NCBI GenBank assembly: GCA_977017575.1
Contig: CDRNVI010000247.1
Coordinates: 1-9,276 of the forward strand
Direction: 5' to 3'
DNA length: 9,276 bases
DNA from: Paramoeba atlantica
Taxonomy: Eukaryota > Protista > Discosea
Positions within the stretch are counted from its first letter, which is position 1, and each line of letters starts with the position of its first letter. Shown piece after piece: positions 1-9,276 of this stretch. Below the pieces are notes generated by a model. The model did no database searches and had not been told where the DNA came from. It saw only the letters and a program-made list of their open reading frames with translations. The translations under genes and the position numbers were made by a program.

Positions 1-154
1 TAAAATTAAAAGTATAAAGATGATCTAGCTCACCAGTTTTATTTAAATTAAAATCTTACACAATGATTTTATATTTATAAACTACTCGCTTCCATCGACC
101 CTCGACTTTGTTGAAGTTTGAGTGTTTGAGTTTACGATATTAAAGAGAAAAAAA

Positions 155-300
155 ATATTATTGCGCTCTATTGGTGGGGCTTTCGTTAAATTATTAAAAG
201 CTCAACGTCATTGTTCGCGTTTTACGTTACACTCCACAAGCTAAACAAGTGCGTTCTGCCTTAATAATCACTACCCCTCACCAAAAGGTCGCAATAATAT
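155..300. ncRNA. Candidate long-stem structured RNA or DNA, copy 1
   Basis: Nested complementarity: ATATTATTGCG 155-165 with CGCAATAATAT 290-300 (11 bp perfect), TGGTGGGG 172-179 with CCCCTCACCA 274-283, and TTATTAA 191-197 with TTAATAA 261-267. No covariation is available because the copies are identical. Confidence 0.4.
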
Positions 301-477
301 ATGTTTTTAGCGTTTAAGATCTGGAGACCATTTTCAAAATAGAAAATGTCAATCGCTTTTTTCTTACGCAAGTACGTCAAAAAAATCGTTTTTCTCCATG
401 AGCTAAAACGAGTTAGTTCGATCGGGCTTTTTTTGATGCTTTTTTTGGATCGCAGCTTCAACAAAAAAAAATTTCCG

Positions 478-1588
478 CTGCTGTTTTCCAACAAAGAAAA
501 TTATAAAAAAATAATTTTGTTGTTGTCAAATACGATCTTTTAAAATATAAAATTTTTTTTATCGTTATAAATTTTATTCCGACATAAATTTGTTGGAAAA
601 GTAACAGTAAAAAGTTGTTAATGAAAAAAAAATAAATTCATTAACAACAACGTTGATGAAAAATAACAATCAACGCTGTTAAATTTCCAACAAAATAATG
701 TCAGAAAAAAATTTCTGCCGAAATAATTTAGCTGATTAAATTTTTATCACGACAAAAATATTTTTTTGTTGATCAATTAAATCGTTATTAACAAAAAAGT
801 TATAACGCTGTTAATTTTCCAACATAAAAATTTTTTATCTCTCAAAAAATATTTTTTGATGTTCAAAGTTATCGTTTGATAACAAAAAAGTTATAACGCT
901 GTAACTTTTCCAACAAAAAAAATTTTTTTTCGTGTTAAAAATTATTTTTGATCAATAAAAATTATTTTCGATGTTCAAATTCATCGTTTGATAACAAAAA
1001 AGTTATAACGCTGTTAATTTTCCATCAAAAATTATTTTTTTTGCTTCAAAAATTTTTTTTAACATAAAAATTTATAATGATGATTACAAAATAAGTGTTG
1101 CAACTCAAAAAAGTTGTTTAACACTGTTAATTTTCCATCAACATCATAATTTTTATTTAAAAATTTTAATCAAAATCAATTTTATAAACATTTTTTGTAA
1201 AAAAATTAAAATTTTTACTGGAAAATTACGGTGAGATGCATAAAAATTAGATTTAAACATAAATTTATGCAAACTACCGTTTAATTTCCAACAAAATTTA
1301 AATTTTTTTCATTCAAAAATAGATTTTTTTAATTTTTCGCCGACAAAATTGAAAAAAAATTGAATTTTCATTCAAAAAGTTGTAAAATTGAGTCTCAGGA
1401 TGAAAAAGTGGAAAAAGACCACATTTTATCAATTCGACGCTAAATTAGCAAAAAATTTCAATTTCTACACCTAAATGACTGTAGAAATTGGTGTTTTCCT
1501 ACAATTTTGTGGAAACTCCTGACAAACACTGCTAAATTTCCAACAAAAAGTCAATTTGCAGGTGCTGCCCGTGGATTTTCCAACAAAA
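478..1588. repeat. Array of ~11 degenerate ~20-bp sites, consensus CTGTTAATTTTCCAACAAAA, within ~90-130-bp subrepeats
   Basis: Plus-strand copies start at 478, 676, 808, 899, 1011, 1124, 1277, 1529 and 1569. Minus-strand copies lie at 589-607 and 1213-1232. The extended unit ATCGTT(TG)ATAACAAAAAAGTTATAACGCTGT occurs at 781, 871 and 983. Confidence 0.9.
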
Positions 1589-2200
1589 TACTAGCAAAAC
1601 TACTCAAAATGCTATTTTTCCGGCAGAAAACCGTCAAAATCTGCTTTTTCTGGGCAGGAATGACAAAAACGGCCCAAAAAAGGCCCTGTCATTTTGCCCA
1701 AAAACGCAGTATTTTTTCCTGTTCTGGCCTGCAAATTAGCGGATGTCCAAGTGCCCCAAAAAAAGTGACTTGGACTCCGAGCCGACTCGAAAAGTCGTAT
1801 TTTCCGGCAGAAACGAAAAAATATGCCACATTTTGTCCGACGATTATTTACAACTTTTTCTCGCATCCCATCATAGCGATTTTGCGGATCTGCAAGTTGG
1901 GAGGGAACCAACTGCATTTTTTGGCCGTTTTGAACCCGTTTTGTAAAAAATCGCATATATAAACTCCATAATTTCCCCTCAGAAATCTGCCACTTTTGGA
2001 CGCCAAAAAGTGTTTTGCAGAATCTCGAGGGCAAAATAGGAGTTTTTTGACCCGATTTTGTGAACAAAACTGGCATCAAAAACTATTCCAAATGCTCCAA
2101 TCCGAATTTCAGCTATTGAACACTAAAAATGCTGAAAATCGCTATTTCGCACTGGAATTCCGCCAAAACTCCTTTTCAATGCGTATTTTGGGCGAGAAAA
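1500..2200. other. GC-richer non-coding block with phased A/T tracts
   Basis: Composition shifts visibly. T-tracts end at 1922, 1931 and 1942 (~10-bp spacing). An internal direct repeat ATTTTCCGGCAGAAA occurs near 1615-1630 and 1799-1813, and there is a hairpin at 1652-1699. Boundaries are approximate. Confidence 0.6.
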
Positions 2201-2518
2201 TCGTGAATTTTATAATTTTTAAACTTTTTTTTGTATAATTTATCATTTTTAGCGCGGATTTGTATAATTTCTCGCATAATTTATTAGTTTTATAGCGTTG
2301 TAGTTAAAATTTTCATAATTTTATCATCAAAGTCATCATTTTTCTATAATTTCAAACAAAATTATTAAAAAAAATGTTGTCTCAGACGAAAAAATTGCAT
2401 GAAAGTTGTTAAACAACACTAAAACTAAAAAAATATCCCGCAGAAATTAAAAAACCGTGATAAAAATTTATAAATTCAAAAGAAAAATTTAAAAATCTTA
2501 AAAATTTATGATGAAATC

Positions 2519-2544
2519 ATCTTCTTTGTACCAAAATCAGATGT
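2519..2544 (-). repeat. Orphan partial copy of the module core (inner hairpin only)
   Basis: The reverse complement ACATCTGATTTTGGTACAAAGAAGAT matches the module core. The same sequence is at 7126-7151. Confidence 0.85.
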
Positions 2545-2756
2545 AAACATCAAAAAATTTTTTTAAAATCACTAGTTGAAACCATCGTCTATGGTTTCTT
2601 TTGTTAATGATCAATGTTTTCATTTCATTCATAACATTTTCACGTTAACTTCGTTCAACTAACTTGAATTTTATTAAAATTATGATTCATAAAATAATTT
2701 TTTCATTGCTAAAAATAAAACCGCAATGGAAATTATTATGAAACAAGTTTTAATAA

Positions 2757-2782
2757 TTCAAACTTAAGTTTGAACTCGAGTT
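2757..2782. repeat. Overlapping perfect palindromes (18 bp and 10 bp) at the left border of the variable cassette
   Basis: TTCAAACTTAAGTTTGAA at 2757-2774 and AACTCGAGTT at 2773-2782. Identical at 7364-7389. Confidence 0.85.
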
Positions 2783-2898
2783 ATAAAATTTTAATAACAT
2801 TAATATATACTTTTAAATAACTTCTATAATTAATTCAAAAGAGAATTTATAATTAAGAACTTATAAAACTATATTTAATGATTTAAAACTTAATAACT

Positions 2899-3006
2899 TG
2901 TTGTAATGTTTTCAATATAATAATATATTTACGATATATTATCTTCTTTGTTCCAAAATCAGATGTTGATTATCGTACATTCTTATTACATGAAAACATA
3001 ACAACA
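2899..3006 (-). ncRNA. Module 1A: constant core (2925-2997, inverted) closed by a short stem
   Basis: The core reads GTTTTCATGTAATAAGAATGTACGATAATCAACATCTGATTTTGGAACAAAGAAGAT on the minus strand. Arms TGTTGTAATGTTTTCA 2899-2914 and TGAAAACATAACAACA 2991-3006 pair at 15 of 16 positions. Confidence 0.65.
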
Positions 3007-3143
3007 TAAAGAATACAATAGGCACTCCTTACATTTAAATGCCCTTAATATAATTTATCGATATATTTAATTACACAAATAATTTAAAATATAATTTATA
3101 AAATATTAATAAAGTTCATGTAAAATGTAAGAAGTTACCCTAG

Positions 3144-3287
3144 TTTTCCTGGTATTGTGAGTATGTTTTCATGTAATAAACATGTACGATAATCAACATC
3201 TGATTTTGACTCAAAGCAGAGTAATCATCGTTAAATATCGTTACAAAGTTATTACAAATAAAACATAAATCACTAATAACAGGAAAA
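3144..3287 (+). ncRNA. Module 1B: variable arm, constant core (3165-3239), anti-repeat and anti-arm
   Basis: TTTTCCTGGTATTGTGAGTAT-GTTTT pairs with AAAAC-ATAAATCACTAATAACAGGAAAA. Confidence 0.75.
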
Positions 3288-3499
3288 TATTAAATACAAA
3301 AATATTTAATAAACTTCGATGCAAAAAAGCATCTTGACAATCTCTGTGTTTTTGTTAAAAAAAATAGCGTAAAACTACAAAACCATATATATAAAATGAA
3401 AAGTGTATAAAAAAGAAAAGCATACACTTTGATACATTCAATCGAAAAATATCTCAATCATGTATCATTAATTTTAGTATATATGGTAGGAGTTTTACC

Positions 3500-3639
3500 T
3501 TTACAGTGCTATTAGTCATGTTTTCATGTAATAAGAATGTACGATAATCAACATCTGATTTGCACTCAAAGTAGAGTAATCATCGTTAAATATCAGTACA
3601 AAGTCATTACAAGAAAACTAAAGATTAAAGCACTGTAAA
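3500..3639 (+). ncRNA. Module 1C: variable arm, constant core (3520-3594), anti-repeat and anti-arm
   Basis: TTTACAGTGCTATTAGTCAT-GTTTTCATGTAAT pairs with ATTACAAGAAAAC-TAAAGATTAAAGCACTGTAAA, including a G.U pair on the plus strand. Confidence 0.75.
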
Positions 3640-3640
3640 A

Positions 3641-3785
3641 TTGCACTAAGATTTCCTTCAGAAATTCAAGTGCAAATATCCGCCCAACTTATAAAATATA
3701 AGTGGCGTCTATATATATTTTTTTATCGAAAAAAACGATAAATAAATAAAGATCATGATAAGATTTCTACGAAATTCAATCATGA
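3641..3785 (+). other. Two TAAG/TCAA internal-loop hairpins (3641-3675, 3753-3785)
   Basis: TTGCACT-AAG-ATTTC-cttca-GAAAT-TCA-AGTGCAA and TCATGAT-AAG-ATTTC-tac-GAAAT-TCA-ATCATGA. Confidence 0.85.
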
Positions 3786-3786
3786 A

Positions 3787-3806
3787 GCATACACTATAGT
3801 GTATGC
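3787..3806. repeat. Perfect 20-bp palindrome GCATACACTATAGTGTATGC
   Basis: Self reverse-complementary, and identical at 8443-8462. Confidence 0.9.
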
Positions 3807-3925
3807 AAATTATTACAAAAATAATAATTTTAAAATTTTTTCTTCGAAATTCAAAGAAGAATTTATTCGAAAAAAATATAAATTTTAATGTTTTCGTGTT
3901 TAACTACAACTTAAATTTATATATA

Positions 3926-4300
3926 TTTCGTTAAATTAAGAGAATAATTAAACGAAACTGTTACTCGGCAAAAATAAGGGAATTTTTGAGTAACAGACCG
4001 TTCAAATTGAAAACAAAAAAACAATTTGCACGGCAATTCTTGGGGTTTTTACGCCTCACGGCTTCGTGATTGGACTAAAGAGCAGGAGCGAGAGCAAGAA
4101 AGTTTGCAGGGGTAGTTGAGTTAGCTATTCCCGGTGGAAGCTAACCTCGATTCTTTAGTCTTTAGTTGTGGTAATTTGGGATAGTGAAGTAAAATTTTTA
4201 AAGTTCACTATCGACAATTACTATTCTCTTTCATCTTTTGGCGTGCATTGCTAATTGATCCCAATAGACAATCACATTCAGAAATGATCGTTGCTATCCC
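3926..4300 (+). ncRNA. Structured RNA of unknown family, copy 1
   Basis: Stems at 3926-3957, 3958-3996, 4056-4069, 4073-4080 with 4153-4160, 4118-4148 and 4168-4224. Two double compensatory changes versus copy 2. Ends are approximate. Confidence 0.65.
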
Positions 4301-4763
4301 TATATGTATGTAAAATATCATACATAAGAATCAATAAGATCTATTTCGTCTCCTCTTTCATCCTTTTAACATAGCAAGACTAATCTATATTATATAATTA
4401 TTATTCAACTTTTTTAATTATATTTTATCTGCTTGAACACCATAGTTCGATAAAAAATAAATAAAAAGATGAATAAATAACTAAAAAATAAAGATAGACA
4501 AGAACAAGAATAGTTTAGTTTAATTCCGTGTTAAATCCTCAATCCTTAAGTCGGATTTGTCACTCCATATACGATCAAACTTTATTTACTTAAATTTTTA
4601 CAAAGATAGTAAAATTAAAAGTATAAAGATGATCTAGCTCACCAGTTTTATTTAAATTAAAATCTTACACAATGATTTTATATTTATAAACTACTCGCTT
4701 CCATCGACCCTCGACTTTGTTGAAGTTTAAGTTTTTGAGTTTACGATATTAAAGAGAAAAAAA

Positions 4764-4909
4764 ATATTATTGCGCTCTATTGGTGGGGCTTTCGTTAAAT
4801 TATTAAAAGCTCAACGTCATTGTTCGCGTTTTACGTTACACTCCACAAGCTAAACAAGTGCGTTCTGCCTTAATAATCACTACCCCTCACCAAAAGGTCG
4901 CAATAATAT
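4764..4909. ncRNA. Candidate long-stem structure, copy 2
   Basis: Identical to 155-300. Confidence 0.4.
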
Positions 4910-5086
4910 ATGTTTTTAGCGTTTAAGATCTGGAGACCATTTTCAAAATAGAAAATGTCAATCGCTTTTTTCTTACGCAAGTACGTCAAAAAAATCGTTT
5001 TTCTCCATGAGCTAAAACGAGTTAGTTCGATCGGGTGTTTTTTGATGCTTTTTTTGGATCGCAGCTTCAACAAAAAAAAATTTCCA

Positions 5087-6195
5087 CTGCTGTTTTCCAA
5101 CAAAGAAAATTATAAAAAAATAATTTTGTTGTTGTCAAATACGATCTTTTAAAATATAAAATTTTTTTTATCGTTATAAATTTTATTCCAACATAAATTT
5201 GTTGGAAAAGTAACAGTAAAAAGTTGTTAATGAAAAAAAATAAATTCATTAACAACAACGTTGATGAAAAATAACAATCAACGCTGTTAAATTTCCAACA
5301 AAATAATGTCAGAAAAAAATTTCTGCCGAAATAATTTAGCTGATTAAATTTTTATCACGACAAAAATATTTTTTTGTTGATCAATTAAATCGTTATTAAC
5401 AAAAAAGTTATAACGCTGTTAATTTTCCAACATAAAAATTTTTTATCTCTCAAAAAATATTTTTTGATGTTCAAAGTTATCGTTTGATAACAAAAAAGTT
5501 ATAACGCTGTAACTTTTCCAACAAAAAAATTTTTTTTCGTGTTAAAAATTATTTTTGATCAATAAAAATTATTTTCGATGTTCAAATTCATCGTTTGATA
5601 ACAAAAAAGTTATAACGCTGTTAATTTTCCATCAAAAATTATTTTTTTTGCTTCAAAAATTTTTTTTAACATAAAAATTTATGATGATGATTACAAAACC
5701 AGTGTTGCAACTCAAAAAAGTTGTTTAACACTGTGAATTTTCCATCAACATCATAATTTTTATTTAAAAATTTTAATCAAAATCAATTTTATAAACATTT
5801 TTTGTAAAAAAATTAAAATTTTTACTGGAAAATTACGGTGAGATGCATAAAAATTAGATTTAAACATAAATTTATGCAAACTACCGTTTAATTTCCAACA
5901 AAATTTAAATTTTTTTCATTCAAAAATAGATTTTTTTAATTTTTCGCTGACAAAATTGAAAAAAAATTGAATTTTCATTCAAAAAGTTGTAAAATTGAGT
6001 CTCAGGATGAAAAAGTGGAAAAAGACCACATTTTATCAATTCGACGCTAAATTAGCAAAAAATTTCAATTTCTACACCTAAATGACTGTAGAAATTGGTG
6101 TTTTCCTACAATTTTGTGGAAATCCCTGACAAACACTGCTAAATTTCCAACAAAAAGTCAATTTGCAGGTGCTGCCCGTGGATTTTCCAACAAAA
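5087..6195. repeat. Array of ~20-bp sites, copy 2
   Basis: Colinear with 478-1588. Confidence 0.9.
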
Positions 6196-6807
6196 TACTA
6201 GCAAAACTACTCAAAATGCTATTTTTCCGGCAGAAAACCGTCAAAATCTGCTTTTTCTGGGCAGGAATGACAAAAACGGCCCAAAAAAGGCCCTGTCATT
6301 TTGCCCAAAAACGCAGTATTTTTTCCTGTTCTGGCCTGCAAATTAGCGGATGTCCAAGTGCCCCAAAAAAAGTGACTTGCACTCCGAGCCGACTCGAAAA
6401 GTCGTATTTTCCGGCAGAAACGAAAAAATATGCCACATTTTGTCCGACGATTATTTACAACTTTTTCTCGCATCCCATCATAGCGATTTTGCGGATCTGC
6501 AGGTTGGGAGGGAGCCAACTGCATTTTTTGGCCGTTTTGAACCCGTTTTGTAAAAAATCGCATATATAAACTCCTTAATTTCCCCTCAGAAATCTGCCAC
6601 TTTTGGAGACCAAAAAGTGTTTTGCAGAATCTAAAGTGGAAAATAGGAGTTTTTTGACCCGATTTTGTGAACAAAACTGGCATCAAAAACTATTCCAAAT
6701 GCTCCAATCCGAATTTCAGCTATTGAACACTAAAAATGCTGAAAATCGCTATTTCGCACTGGAATTCCGCCAAAACTCCTTTTCAATGCGTATTTTGGGC
6801 GAGAAAA
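6107..6807. other. GC-richer block, copy 2
   Basis: Colinear with 1500-2200. Confidence 0.6.
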
Positions 6808-7502
6808 CCGTCGATTTTATAATTTTTAAACTTTTTTTTGTATAATTTATCATTTTTAGCGCGGATTTCTATAATTTCTCGCATAATTTATTAGTTTTAT
6901 AGCGTTGTAGTTAAAATTTTCATAATTTTATCATCAAAGTCATCATTTTTCTATAATTTCAAACAAAATTATTAAAAAAAATGTTGTCTCAGACGAAAAA
7001 ATTGCATGAAAGTTGTTAAACAACACTAAAACTAAAAAAATATCCCGCAGAAATTAAAAAACCGTGATAAAAATTTATAAATTCAAAAGAAAAATTTAAA
7101 AATCTTAAAAATTTATGATGAAATCATCTTCTTTGTACCAAAATCAGATGTAAACATCAAAAAATTTTTTTAAAATCACTAGTTGAAACCATCGTCTATG
7201 GTTTCTTTTGTTAATGATCAATGTTTTCATTTCATTCATAACATTTTCACGTTAACTTCGTTCAACTAACTTGAATTTTATTAAAATTATGATTCATAAA
7301 ATAATTTTTTCATTGCTAAAAATAGAATCGCAATGGAAATTATTATGAAACAAGTTTTAATAATTCAAACTTAAGTTTGAACTCGAGTTATAAAATTTTA
7401 TAAATTTAAATTATAATTTCAATCATTTCTATAATTAATTCAATAGAGAATTTATAATTATGAAACTATGAAACTATATTTAATGATTTAAAATTTAATA
7501 AT

Positions 7503-7632
7503 CCCTGTATGTGTTCTTTATGTTTTCAATGTCTGATGATATGTTCGATATATCATCTTCTTTGTACCAAAATCAGATGTTGATTATCGTACATTCTTAT
7601 TACATGAAAACAAAAAAGAACATACAACAGGG
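7503..7632 (-). ncRNA. Module 2A: inverted constant core (~7541-7611) closed by a long stem
   Basis: CCCTGTATGTGTTCTTTATGTTTTCA 7503-7528 pairs with TGAAAACAAAAAAGAACATACAACAGGG 7605-7632. Confidence 0.7.
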
Positions 7633-7756
7633 AAATACTAAGATACTTTAATAACTATTATGTATATAAATTGATCGAATATATAATTACAAAAATAATT
7701 TAAAATATTCAATAATATTAAATATATATAGTTATTAAAGTGATCTTGTATCCTAG

Positions 7757-7899
7757 TTCATGTCGATTCTTTTAGGTTTTCATGTAATAAGAATGTACGA
7801 TAATCAACATCTGATTTTGACTCAAAGTAGAGTAATCATCGTTAAATATCAGTACAAAACTTATTACAAAGAAAACAACTAATAAAGCATCGACATGAA
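7757..7899 (+). ncRNA. Module 2B: variable arm, constant core (7776-7850), anti-repeat and anti-arm
   Basis: TTCATGTCGATTCTTTTAG-GTTTTCATGTAATAA pairs with TTATTACAAAGAAAAC-AACTAATAAAGCATCGACATGAA. Confidence 0.75.
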
Positions 7900-7900
7900 A

Positions 7901-7970
7901 TTCTGCTAAGATTTCTACGAAATTCAAGCAGAAAATTACACTAAGATTTCCTATAGAAATTCAAGTGTAA
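7901..7970 (+). other. Two TAAG/TCAA hairpins (7901-7933, 7936-7970) directly after module 2B
   Basis: Outer stems are TTCTGCT/AGCAGAA and TTACACT/AGTGTAA, around the same internal loop. Confidence 0.85.
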
Positions 7971-8119
7971 ACAAACATTAGTATTGCAAAAACAATCTAT
8001 GTTTGTATTAAAAAAAACACATCTAGAACAATATAATATAAATCAATAAAAATATTTAATTACAAAAATAATATAAAATATAATTTATAAATTTATTATT
8101 AAAATGATCTAGATGAACA

Positions 8120-8262
8120 TATTCCTGGGTATTCTAATGTGGTTTTCATGTAATAAACATGTACGATAATCAACATCTGATTTTGACTCAAAGTAGAGTA
8201 ATCATCGTTAAATATCGTATAAAGTTTATTAATAATAAAACCACAAAGGAATCCAAGGAATA
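8120..8262 (+). ncRNA. Module 2C: variable arm, constant core (8142-8216), anti-repeat and anti-arm
   Basis: TATTCCTGGGTATTCTAATGTG-GTTTT pairs with AAAAC-CACAAAGGAATCCAAGGAATA, including a U.G pair on the plus strand. Confidence 0.75.
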
Positions 8263-8263
8263 A

Positions 8264-8441
8264 TTATGCTAAGATTTATACTAAATTCAAGCATAAGATT
8301 GCACTAAGATTTCCTTCAGAAATTCAAGTGCAAATATCCGCTCAACTTATAAAATATAAGTGGCGTCTATATATTTAATCATTACAAAAATAATGAATTA
8401 AATAGATCATGATAAGATTTTTTACAAAAATTCAATCATGA
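8264..8441 (+). other. Three TAAG/TCAA hairpins (8264-8296, 8299-8333, 8407-8441) after module 2C
   Basis: Outer stems are TTATGCT/AGCATAA, TTGCACT/AGTGCAA and TCATGAT/ATCATGA. Inner stems also vary compensatorily (ATTTA/TAAAT, ATTTTT/AAAAAT). Confidence 0.85.
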
Positions 8442-8581
8442 AGCATACACTATAGTGTATGCAAATTATTACAAAAATAATAATTTTAAAATTTTTTCTT
8501 CGAAATTCAAAGAAGAATTTATTCGAAAAAAATATAAATTTTAATGTTTACGTGTTTAACTACAACTTAAATTTATATATA

Positions 8582-8956
8582 TTTCGTTAAATTAAGAGAA
8601 TAATTAAACGAAACTGTTACTCGGCAAAAATAAGGGAATTTTTGAGTAACAGACCGTTCAAATTGAAAACAAAAAAACAATTTGCACGGCAATTCTTGGG
8701 GTTTTTACGCCTCACGGCTTCGTGATTGGACTAAAGAGCAGGAGCGAGAGCAAGAAAGTTTGCAGGGGTAGTTGAGTTAGCTATTCCCGGTGGTAGCTAA
8801 CCTCGATTCCTTAGTCTTTAGTTGTGATAATTTGGGATAGCGAAGTAAAATTTTTAAAGTTCGCTATCGACAATTATTGTTCTCTTTCATCTTTTGGCGT
8901 GCATTGCTAATTGATCCCAATAGACAATCACATTCAGAAATGATCGTTGCTATCCC
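8582..8956 (+). ncRNA. Structured RNA of unknown family, copy 2
   Basis: Homologue of 3926-4300, with C8841-G8863 replacing T4185-A4207 and A8827-T8877 replacing G4171-C4221. Confidence 0.65.
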
Positions 8957-9264
8957 TATATGTATGTAAAATATCATACATAAGAATCAATAAGATCTAT
9001 TTCGTCTCCTCTTTTTTCTTTTAAAATAGCAGGACTAATCTATATTATATAGTTATTATTCAACTTTTTTAATTATATTTTATCTGCTTGAACACCATAG
9101 TTCGATAAAAAATAAATAAAAAGATGAATAAATAACTAAAAAATAAAGATAGACAAGAACAAGAATAGTTTAGTTTAATTCCGTGTTAAATCCTCAATCC
9201 TTAAGTCGGATTTGTCACTCCATATACGATCAAACTTTATTTACTTAAATTTTTACAAAGATAG

Positions 9265-9276
9265 TAAAATTAAAAG
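9265..9276. repeat. First 12 nt of a third unit, or a circular overlap
   Basis: TAAAATTAAAAG equals 1-12 and 4610-4621, and is preceded by the same unit end (CAAAGATAG). Confidence 0.85.

Follow-up and report, generated by a model that had tools for sequence, protein, structure and literature searches.

Tandem units and their constant part

The window, that is, the whole 9,276-nt stretch of DNA analyzed here, consists of 2.0 copies of a 4.61–4.66-kb unit arranged head-to-tail, as established by global alignment of both units, with positions 9266–9276 representing the opening 11 nt of a third unit (Table 1). No genes, tRNAs, rRNAs, Rfam families or protein homologs were found in the window. 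The GC content is 27%, the CpG observed/expected ratio is 1.45, and strand composition is skewed over most of the unit. Outside positions 2794–3779 and 7401–8435, the 2 copies are 98.8% identical, with 2762 matches, 29 mismatches and 2 gap columns in the left constant part (1–2793 versus 4610–7400) and 816 matches, 13 mismatches and 2 gap columns in the right constant part (3780–4609 versus 8436–9265). The constant part thus spans ~3.6 kb, or 79% of the unit, and its repeats are all in one orientation. When calculated per 100 nt, identity is 97–100% except between about 2794–3766 and 7401–8421, confirming the claim of a preliminary description of this locus that near-identical units contain a sharply diverged stretch; its notion of a tandem array homogenized by concerted evolution describes the constant part reasonably well. 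A truncated relic of the hairpin modules described below lies inside this otherwise constant DNA, about 420 nt to the left of hairpin A.

Inside the variable region, identity between the copies drops to about 70%, and substitutions alone amount to about 12%, compared to 1.2% in the flanks. The preliminary description had delimited the diverged stretch as 2794–3640 and 7401–8298 (665 matches in 977 alignment columns, 209 of them gap columns), with identity resuming exactly at a TTGCACT hairpin starting at 3641 and 8299. This placement needs correction, the boundary being located about 140 nt further to the right: the TTGCACT stem-loop and the next ~75 nt are nearly identical, positions 3717–3779 are diverged again (123 of the 144 columns match over 3641–3779), and unbroken identity begins only at about 3780/8436.

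Table 1. Coordinates of the features identified in the window.
Feature	Position	Strand	Basis and remarks
Tandem unit 1, cassette type Y	1–4609	+	Unit-start anchors at 1, 4610 and 9266
Truncated hairpin-module relic	2508–2544; second copy 7115–7151	+	Repeat-family listing; profile match, E = 5e-6
Perfect 18-nt palindrome TTCAAACTTAAGTTTGAA	2757–2774; second copy 7364–7381		20 nt left of the X/Y divergence boundary
Variable region, unit 1, type Y	2794–3779		Alignment; 100% identical to 4 ctg3670c units
Long imperfect AT-rich palindrome, type Y	2885–3275		Fold −111 kcal/mol, z = −13.0; arms with 145 matches, 27 mismatches
Hairpin module class A, unit 1	2895–3010	+	Conserved 42-nt arm is the 3′ arm on the + strand
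Centre motif TATTTAATTACAMAAATAATTTAAAATAT	3048–3092; further copies 7664–7708, 8037–8081		Repeat-family listing
Hairpin module class B, B1a	3150–3265	−	Closest copy: second B of unit 2 (92%)
Hairpin module class B, B1b	3505–3620	−	Closest copy: first B of unit 2 (94.5%)
Small stem-loop: 7-bp variable outer stem, AA/CA internal loop, GAUUUC/GAAAUU inner stem	3641–3675	+	Stem-pair covariation
Small stem-loop, same family as 3641–3675	3754–3784	+	Stem-pair covariation
Perfect 20-nt palindrome GCATACACTATAGTGTATGC	3787–3806; second copy 8443–8462		Directly right of the variable region; inverted-repeat listing
Tandem unit 2, cassette type X	4610–9265	+	Global alignment, unit-start anchors
Variable region, unit 2, type X	7401–8435		Alignment; 99.7% identical to 1 ctg3670c unit
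Long imperfect AT-rich palindrome, type X	7500–7890		Fold −129 kcal/mol, z = −14.8; arms with 154 matches, 14 mismatches; inverted-repeat listing
Hairpin module class A, unit 2	7509–7625	+	Profile match
Hairpin module class B, B2a	7760–7876	−	Profile match
Paired small stem-loops (7901–7933, 7936–7970)	7901–7970	+	Stem-pair covariation
Hairpin module class B, B2b	8127–8242	−	Profile match
Paired small stem-loops (8264–8296, 8299–8333)	8264–8333	+	Stem-pair covariation
Small stem-loop, compensated inner-stem change GAUUUUU/AAAAAUU	8408–8440	+	Stem-pair covariation

The unit is rightly called ORF-less, with no Pfam match and no protein homolog outside the array. The longest open frame (172 codons) lies in a locally GC-richer stretch and overlaps a 156-codon frame of the opposite strand. 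SNPs within the called ORF are spread 4/4/3 over codon positions 1/2/3, and relatives of this ORF are absent among about 15 billion predicted proteins; the ORF is spurious. When 10 open pieces taken from cassettes X and Y, defined as stop-free under translation table 11, were compared with Pfam, none matched a family, the best hit (E = 0.19) being unrelated, and in Rfam nothing came near any gathering score, the best matches being miRNA models at 23–26 bits against cut-offs of 100–150. No transposase was found anywhere, and no real gene in the 28–35 kb of array contigs. Collections of plasmid, phage, viral, prokaryotic-genome and JGI metagenome sequences gave no match, and exact motif scans of contig collections yielded nothing related. 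The absence of matches in the former collections, together with the ORF-less array of at least 28–35 kb, its GC content and its CpG ratio, points to a eukaryotic origin. Bacterial hairpin elements (integron attC sites, REP/MITE) were considered and rejected, there being no gene cassettes, integrase or gene-dense surroundings, and there is no enrichment of sigma-70-like sites (32 observed versus 29 expected).

A nested palindrome and small stem-loops in the variable region

The core of every cassette type is an AT-rich palindrome of ~390 nt, behind which there is usually another copy of its right arm; in types X and Y, this is a further direct copy of ~360 nt. The palindrome arms are about 190 nt long, 84–92% complementary where aligned, and meet at an AT-rich centre motif, with a local GC content of about 20%. 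In type Y, hairpin A, a spacer, the centre motif, a second spacer and the first hairpin B follow one another. In both X and Y, the segment from A to B folds as a single hairpin with ~190-bp arms (z = −13 to −15). The "module cores" previously described as common to the 2 copies are real and correspond to 3 hairpin modules of ~115 nt per unit (profile E-values of 1e-28 to 1e-32). Single modules, too, fold more stably than their shuffled counterparts, with z-scores between −2.3 and −6.1. One arm contains invariant blocks of 25 and 15 nt, the 25 nt being invariant in the 6 copies of the window and an identical 23-mer occurring in all 9 distinct hairpin modules. Within the long hairpin, the 3′ arm of A and the 5′ arm of B form a perfect duplex of 43–50 bp. 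What varies between cassettes are the spacers and the number and order of the modules.

The 2 arms of one cassette co-evolve. The inner arms are more alike within a cassette (0.65–0.72) than is the same arm across cassettes (0.53–0.64), the 3 within-type arm pairs being the top 3 of 15 pairs (chance 1 in 455), and the basal stems outside the conserved module pair best with their own partner (permutation p = 0.001). The 7 small stem-loops, all located on one strand, display clean compensatory changes, with 100% of the cells paired, both-sided changes in 6 of 13 pairs and none of 500 shuffles equally good. No RNA family described so far matches these stem-loops, which makes them candidates for a novel structured small RNA or processing signal.

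A stable hairpin with one conserved arm is what would be expected of a small-RNA locus, and long-duplex inverted repeats with co-evolving arms, tandem reiteration and a single conserved arm among paralogous hairpins are likewise found in hpRNA/endo-siRNA loci and tandem miRNA clusters, such as zebrafish miR-430 and primate C19MC. Unlike these, the present locus matches no described Rfam family and has hairpins of 105–125 nt (modules) or about 390 nt (long form), far longer than animal pre-miRNAs. It is conceivable, albeit rather unlikely, that we are dealing with a fast-evolving locus of the hpRNA/endo-siRNA or miRNA-cluster type, in which selection, for example, in an arms race with a target, drives the divergence instead of palindrome instability, and the array simply amplifies the dose. 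The perfect A–B duplex, the invariant blocks amid diverging sequence, the co-evolving arms, the covarying basal stems and the strand-specific small stem-loops would all fit such a locus; however, the invariant block speaks against diversification of the small RNA itself, and swapped module order, loss of an arm and crossover within the hairpin, all observed among the cassettes (see below), are typical of structural instability.

The inverted copies A (+) and B (−) bracket variable DNA, as would the terminal inverted repeats of a foldback/MITE-like transposable element that had been inserted into the unit before amplification of the array, with A and the last B as its termini and with the variability usual for foldback elements. 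The varying number of internal sub-repeats and the nearby truncated module copy agree with this scenario, although the latter equally fits decay of a longer sub-repeat array. The flanks of the modules are inverted complements rather than direct target-site duplications, and copies were found neither outside the cassette nor in the collections searched, which, along with the lack of a transposase, makes a mobile element quite improbable.

In DNA structure, the locus resembles palindromic AT-rich repeats (PATRRs) and other long DNA palindromes, with which it shares an AT-rich near-palindrome of several hundred bp, polymorphism in size and sequence centered on the palindrome, asymmetric variants in which part of an arm is missing (here, type Z) and breakpoints inside the palindrome (here, type X′). 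Unlike PATRRs, the palindrome is nested, each arm itself being a hairpin and is reiterated once per tandem unit; a function is suggested by the 42-nt block that does not vary.

Cassette types and their linkage to the constant part

Through the spurious ORF, the window was traced to ENA assembly ERZ24900291, and further units, about 14 in addition to the 2 of the window, were obtained from contigs ctg3670c and ctg3633c of this assembly. Their constant part is about 99% identical, and unit sizes over the 3 contigs range from 4538 to 4657 bp. The constant-plus-variable layout thus extends to about 16 units, among which there are 4 cassette types, namely Y, X, the Y/X recombinant X′ and Z, with pairwise likeness of 69–79% and modules in common. 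The prediction that the source holds more cassette variants than the 2 of the window was therefore borne out by X′ and Z. The 6 units of contig ctg3670c succeed one another as Y,Y,X′,X,Y,Y. The 7.65 units of ctg3633c are all type Z, with at least 4 consecutive sequenced units being identical over their full length. Neighboring units are accordingly more alike than distant ones (runs Y,Y, X′,X and Y,Y, plus the all-Z contig), as would be expected if the array were homogenized by unequal crossing-over and conversion. The cassettes also differ in structure: X′ has a Y-type left and an X-type right part joined by a breakpoint inside hairpin A, the best-matching B modules of X and Y are in swapped order, and type Z is devoid of one B (right-arm hairpin).

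In the constant part, about 45 SNPs show perfect linkage with the cassette type, which indicates that the units are lineages, with one visible crossover, in hairpin A, and argues against free exchange of cassettes on a common chassis. The linkage would also be compatible with a foreign cassette having once been exchanged into a common unit. Nor is the unit a chimera of unrelated loci, given that it recurs on 2 independent contigs of one assembly. Long-read metagenome assemblers easily collapse or circularize tandem repeats, and the contig ends do not close cleanly; nevertheless, because independent contigs show this unit with the same boundaries and with identical Y and X cassettes, an artefact could affect just the number and order of units, and that the unit itself was misassembled is highly unlikely.

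The contig names carry the suffix "c", which we take to be the metaMDBG convention for contigs called circular by the assembler. This suffix and the extent of the window, 2 units plus 11 nt, would also fit an extrachromosomal multimer, and all 3 contigs remain within repeat DNA up to their ends. Monomeric 4.6-kb circles, for which the preliminary description proposed a test, are unsupported: the assembled contigs are multimeric, and the ends of the 28-kb ctg3670c overlap by 505 versus 413 nt, with a 92-nt indel, and do not close cleanly.

The preliminary description had likened the unit to kinetoplast minicircles, that is, extrachromosomal circles with a replication or expression chassis and a diversifying small-RNA payload present in many variants. 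In Trypanosoma brucei, minicircle cassettes are ~142 nt long with 18-bp inverted repeats (PMC9202587), and the locus resembles minicircles in combining a conserved region with a variable one in which small cassettes are framed by inverted repeats. Unlike in minicircles, the proportions are reversed, with the constant part predominating, the units are in tandem, and there is one common cassette sequence. The universal minicircle sequence CSB-3, GGGGTTGGTGTA (motif as in PMC9202587), has no match in either strand at up to 2 mismatches; CSB-1, GGGCGTGCA, has one 8/9 match per unit (TGGCGTGCA at 4239 and 8895), with CSB-2 and CSB-3 being absent, as read by eye, from the 100 nt that follow. Although the layout across units and the 4 variants, the "c" suffixes, the extent of the window, the lack of a unique flank on the 3 contigs, the strand-composition skew and the X/Y haplotype switches, which are confined to unit positions 124–427 and could mark a joining site, would suit a minicircle-like molecule, we consider it improbable: the cassettes are the same hairpin with an identical core and not different guide-like genes, just 3 basic types and 1 recombinant occur in about 16 units, the constant-part haplotype is tied to the cassette, the ends of ctg3670c do not close exactly, and ctg3633c has a length of 7.65 units.

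Constant regions of comparable homogeneity are known from the mitochondrial chromosomes of Diplonema papillatum, where they make up 95% of 6–7-kb circles, are 97–98% identical within a class and contain direct and tandem repeats in one orientation, the cassette alone being different (PMC3035467). The array similarly has a large, near-identical, repeat-rich non-coding region with one-orientation repeats and a short distinguishing cassette. Yet, unlike the diplonemid cassettes, those of ~1 kb found here are interrelated through common hairpin modules, palindromic and without a detectable coding fragment (no Pfam family in the open pieces, no tRNA or rRNA), and the units are concatenated; a multipartite organellar chromosome with gene fragments as cassettes is thus very hard to credit.

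Probable palindrome instability within a homogenized array

Macrosatellites, in which multi-kb sequences are repeated in tandem, include human D4Z4 and DXZ4 as well as the 6.1-kb RNU2 array. The array analyzed here resembles them in its head-to-tail units of at least 1 kb, in fact several kb, with very high identity and runs of identical neighbors, in being mostly or wholly non-coding, and in having internal sub-repeats and interspersed variant units. Unlike in those examples, no known gene or snRNA is present, one 1-kb stretch with sharp limits has diverged about 10 times more than the rest, and the array is known from repeat-only contigs. We favor, with moderate confidence, a long array of a non-coding ~4.6-kb unit, of the macrosatellite type and most likely from an AT-rich eukaryotic genome sampled in a long-read metagenome assembly, in which the variable stretch is an unstable nested palindrome rather than a swappable payload. 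Layout, additional variants and homogenization are retained from the earlier reading, and the kinetoplast analogy, the payload, free exchange and monomeric circles find no support. Indeed, the most payload-like part of the cassette, harboring the 23-mer, is also its most conserved part, and palindrome instability, not a diversifying payload, is probably behind the variation between copies.

Under the macrosatellite reading, the constant 3.6 kb would be held at about 99% identity by unequal crossing-over and conversion. Module A and its inverted copy B, each of ~115 nt, flank a palindromic spacer centered on the conserved AT-rich motif, and such a palindrome would readily form hairpins or cruciforms and undergo template switching, deletion and unequal exchange. 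If the arms correct each other, or if selection keeps them complementary, changes would spread within a cassette and not between units. Structurally differing cassettes may, in turn, block conversion from neighboring units, which would let this stretch drift about 10 times further than the DNA on either side. Instability alone leaves the identical 42-nt arm of all copies unexplained. The conserved hairpin arm and the covarying small stem-loops on one strand would be constrained as single-stranded structures, for which the simplest function might be as small-RNA precursors and processing signals released from a long hairpin transcript. The palindromic hairpin locus may accordingly be a source of small RNA, although it could instead act as DNA.

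A more speculative alternative, which we regard as doubtful, is that the units are copies of an extrachromosomal or organellar DNA that has no genes, maintains itself autonomously and exists as mixed multimeric circles. Its conserved information would reside only in single-strand structure, with the cassette serving as an origin, a resolution site or a small-RNA gene present in several incompatible or competing variants. The conserved structures concerned would be the nested palindrome, including the 42-nt arm that does not vary, and the 2 covarying stem-loop families.

If the macrosatellite reading is correct, the locus offers a clean natural case of a long palindrome escaping array homogenization, with sharp boundaries, a recombinant caught in the hairpin and co-evolving arms, and is informative for the evolution of repeat arrays and palindromes. 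ORF-less contigs called circular by long-read metagenome assemblers can be repeat arrays of a host or of a eukaryote and should not be taken as novel replicons without read-level checks.

Unit variants and the extent of the array

The preliminary description had recognised near-identical units around a variable cassette, and this observation is real and extends to further units. Between the two copies in the window, 2762 of 2793 alignment columns match in the left constant part and 816 of 831 in the right constant part, whereas the variable stretch (2794-3779 and 7401-8435) matches in 788 of 1121 columns, the rest being 112 mismatches and 221 gap columns. Its left boundary had been placed correctly. 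For the right boundary, set at 3641/8299, the TTGCACT stem-loop and ~75 nt beyond it are indeed common to both copies, but 3717-3779 diverges anew, and identity is unbroken only from ~3780/8436. Cassette divergence is 5-13% even between the best-matching pieces, compared with 1.2% in the flanks; thus, the excess divergence is not only due to misalignment of paralogs.

The 154-codon ORF on record led to 2 further contigs with the same unit in the ENA assembly ERZ24900291, ctg3670c (28,027 bp) and ctg3633c (34,697 bp). The window is a substring of neither and hence belongs to this family as a separate, third contig or region. ctg3670c contains 6 units, which in the window orientation follow the order Y, Y, X', X, Y, Y, where Y and X are the cassette types of window units 1 and 2, respectively, and X' is a Y/X recombinant. 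ctg3633c, of which 20 kb was read, carries identical 4538-bp units with a third cassette type, Z, the number of such units being at least 7.6 by gene-copy counts. Cassette Y is 100% identical in 4 more units and cassette X is 99.7% identical in 1 more unit, with X' sharing 96.8% identity with X. Cassette Z is only 69-79% identical to the other cassettes, whereas the constant part of the Z units is ~99% identical to that of the window. The predicted further cassette variants thus exist, though modestly, as 3 basic types and 1 recombinant in ~16 units. Distant blastn searches against plasmid and phage collections gave no match, exact scans for the hairpin core in viral (IMG/VR), prokaryotic (GTDB-genome), and JGI-metagenome collections returned 0 matches, and no literature was found for the sequence strings of the array or for ERZ24900291. 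Matches to the stem-loop pattern in contig collections were single chance ones, without other similarity.

The suffix "c" in the contig names presumably denotes a circular call, following metaMDBG naming. The window (9276 nt) comprises 2 units plus 11 nt, and ctg3633c comprises 7.65 units. The overlap between the ends of ctg3670c (L003/L005), 505 versus 413 nt, is nowhere exact and contains a 92-nt indel, which rules out clean circularity of this contig. The indel lies at unit coordinates ~2257-2350, in ~82-92-nt direct repeats, and implies that the "constant" part comes in additional lengths within the array. None of the contigs reaches unique DNA. Because an assembler would be expected to produce such cycles from many near-identical units in a row, circularity is at most a possibility here, and a heterogeneous tandem array of great length would be the simpler reading. 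From the at least 28-35 kb without an ORF, the base composition, including the CpG ratio of 1.45, the excess of short hairpins, and the absence from prokaryotic, plasmid, and viral collections, we infer that the array is eukaryotic.

Coordinates and properties of features in the window
Feature	Position	Second copy	Remarks
Tandem unit 1	1-4609		head-to-tail with unit 2
Tandem unit 2	4610-9265		followed by the first 11 bases of a third unit
Conserved AT-rich centre motif	3048-3092	7664-7708	
Long palindrome, type Y	2885-3275		-111 kcal/mol, z = -13.0
Long palindrome, type X	7500-7890		-129 kcal/mol, z = -14.8
18-nt perfect palindrome	2757-2774	7364-7381	just outside the X/Y variable stretch
20-nt perfect palindrome	3787-3806	8443-8462	just outside the X/Y variable stretch
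Local near-perfect palindromes	within 3950-4340		e.g., CTGTTACTC...GAGTAACAG and GATAGTGAAGT...ACTTCACTATC

Hairpin modules and the long palindrome

One plan is common to all cassette types. The variable stretch opens with a ~115-nt hairpin module of class A on the + strand, which in X and Y is followed by 2 class B modules in the opposite orientation, ~360 nt apart, and in Z by a single B. All 9 distinct modules contain the same 23-mer, ATCAGATGTTGATTATCGTACAT, and the 6 modules of the window share invariant runs of 25 and 15 nt in the same arm, with 2 variable positions between them. Every module is far more stable than shuffled sequence (z = -2.3 to -6.1). Its stem runs on past the conserved part, and the flanks it takes in bear no relation to those of other copies yet are complementary to each other, the duplexes of a module's own flanks averaging -5.6 kcal/mol versus -3.0 for swapped ones (permutation p = 0.001). 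Folding energy of the modules is uninformative for the choice of strand, since the - strand folds better for both orientations owing to its G+U richness.

A single imperfect palindrome of ~390 nt spans, in order, module A, a spacer, the AT-rich centre motif, a second spacer, and the first B; in type X it includes a ~50-bp perfect duplex of the A 3' arm with the B 5' arm. Type Z retains the inner palindrome and has lost the right-arm hairpin. In this type (L006 17853-18273, window orientation), an unrelated ~90-nt segment (...GGAGCGCATAGTTCCTATCAC...) replaces the first B hairpin of X/Y; its pairing partner is the left spacer of that cassette, indicating that the palindrome has been rebuilt or kept with a different sequence. 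The inner spacer arms are 0.65-0.72 identical within the same cassette versus 0.53-0.64 for the same arm in different cassette types (all columns), and the 3 within-type pairs rank as the top 3 of the 15 pairs.

To the right of the B modules lie small stem-loops, 7 in number and all on the + strand. Each consists of an outer stem of 6-7 bp whose sequence is free, an internal loop that is always AA/CA, and an inner stem, GAUUUC/GAAAUU, in which a G.U pair never varies. All cells are paired, with 6 of the 13 pairs changed on both sides; this pairing was equalled by 0 of 500 shuffles, and slid controls were only 23-52% paired.

The best matches between the B modules of window units 1 and 2 are crosswise (B1a-B2b, 92%; B1b-B2a, 94.5%), so that the sub-repeat order differs between X and Y. 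In X', the sequence is that of Y as far as the hairpin A loop and that of X beyond it. Z is a mosaic that resembles Y at both ends and in part of the middle, and X in the surroundings of its B module. In the constant part, ~45 SNPs separate X from Y units and are fully linked to the cassette type, with the exception of X'. The X' unit (ctg3670c unit 3) has the Y SNP haplotype on the left and the X haplotype on the right, as well as a 127-nt deletion at 322-448. All switches between X and Y haplotypes in neighbouring units fall within 124-427 and represent 2 or 3 events, possibly not independent; this region, in which the X' deletion also lies, may be a recombination hotspot or a joining site. 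A truncated module relic at 2508-2544 indicates that the sub-repeat array once extended further to the left.

Coding capacity, known systems, and proposed explanation

ARAGORN found no tRNA in the window, its metazoan-mitochondrial calls in the constant part being only low-complexity sequence, and Rfam searches of the whole window and of sub-regions produced nothing near a threshold. Among the ORFs, checked under 26 genetic codes, the longest open frame in standard-type codes has 172 codons, and the few longer ones need TAA/TAG as sense. Pfam assigned no family to any open piece of the window, and protein searches revealed no homolog beyond the same contig; 2 weak matches were to repeat proteins and reflect chance similarity. 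The window has a GC content of 27%, with a 40% island at ~1400-2250. This island (also 6010-6860), set within a unit of 20-27% GC, holds overlapping open frames of 172 and 156 codons on both strands, an internal duplication (TTTTCCGGCAGAAA... at ~1612 and ~1797), and a local SNP cluster at 2001-2032. The 154-codon ORF predicted there by the gene caller (1615-2076, - strand, from ATG) has SNPs distributed 4/4/3 over the codon positions and, lacking third-position bias, is not coding. Given the same pattern and the lack of Pfam matches and homologs, the GC island is not coding. A bacterial promoter reading is likewise rejected, with promoter-like sites at chance level (32 versus 29 +/- 6.7), so that a perfect sigma-70 consensus at 529-500 on the - strand (TTGACA, 18 nt, TATAAT) is probably fortuitous. 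Short hairpins are ~4 times commoner than in Markov shuffles (29 versus 6.9 +/- 3.8), and a mild enrichment of terminator-like hairpins is consistent with this general excess. By eye, hammerhead and C/D or H/ACA snoRNA readings of the hairpin modules fail, with incomplete boxes and no Rfam match, and a nematode SL1 reading of the centre motif (TTTAATTAC...), which it resembles, is rejected for lack of a splice donor or Sm site.

The preliminary description had likened the unit to kinetoplast minicircles, with a chassis and a diversifying small-RNA payload. The defining features of kinetoplast minicircles are CSB-1/2/3 and guide RNA genes that differ by class, located in ~142-nt cassettes between 18-bp inverted repeats (PMC9202587). 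In the window, CSB-3 is absent, CSB-1 is matched at 8 of 9 positions once per unit, and a single sequence is common to the cassettes instead of class-specific guide genes; accordingly, the analogy does not hold and the window is outside the kinetoplast minicircle family. The preliminary interpretation is half right: further variants exist and homogenisation does apply to the array, but the cassettes are not a diversifying payload. Diplonemid mitochondrial chromosomes are 95% constant and 97-98% identical, with a repeat-rich region and a short cassette (PMC3035467). The likeness lies in the combination of a large constant repeat-rich region with a short cassette; however, diplonemid cassettes are unique and contain gene fragments, whereas those of the window are related and palindromic, with no coding piece found. 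The nearest known behaviour is that of macrosatellites for the array and of palindromic AT-rich repeats for the hotspot, and long-hairpin or clustered small-RNA loci are the nearest match for a possible function of the cassette.

The best explanation is a macrosatellite-type array of non-coding units whose nested AT-rich palindrome acts as a structural-change hotspot. The palindrome itself, its rearranged variants, the in-hairpin crossover, the co-evolving arms, and the marked contrast with the flanking DNA were directly observed. Variants would arise by palindrome-driven breakage and template switching, each cassette being kept symmetric by arm-to-arm correction or selection for pairing, and heterology would then prevent neighbouring units from homogenising the stretch. 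Both the invariant arm and the 2 families of covarying structures point to a function exerted as single strands. The most economical guess is that a long hairpin transcript would give rise to putative small RNAs, the stem-loops of the + strand serving as signals for processing or for transcript ends; alternatively, the cassette might act at the DNA level as a putative origin, resolution, or recombination site.

Structured elements of the constant part

The perfect palindromes just outside the X/Y variable stretch could delimit conversion tracts or serve as protein sites; the left boundary between Y and Z lies elsewhere, at ~2999, and hence these palindromes are not universal boundaries. The region 3950-4340, which contains several near-perfect local palindromes, is strongly structured on both strands (z = -4.8 each) and has no match in Rfam.

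A second structured repeat family, ...CGCTGTTAAWTTTCCAACAAAA, occupies 480-1600 (and 5090-6210), with ~10 copies per unit, 9 of them on the + strand, and 20 matches in the window versus 0.7 expected. Most copies are preceded by a short stem-loop in which the sequence varies and the pairing is kept (e.g., CGTTTGATAAC/GTTATAACG versus GTGTTGCAAC/GTTGTTTAACAC), and those at 750-1140 form tandem sub-repeats of ~91-112 bp.

Over the whole unit, at 27% GC, CpG dinucleotides are in excess (observed/expected 1.45) and TpA dinucleotides are too few (0.70). An excess of CpG in AT-rich DNA has been reported for some insect genomes, such as that of the honeybee, and would be a weak clue to the host. Except at ~3800-4200, the unit shows negative GC skew almost throughout.
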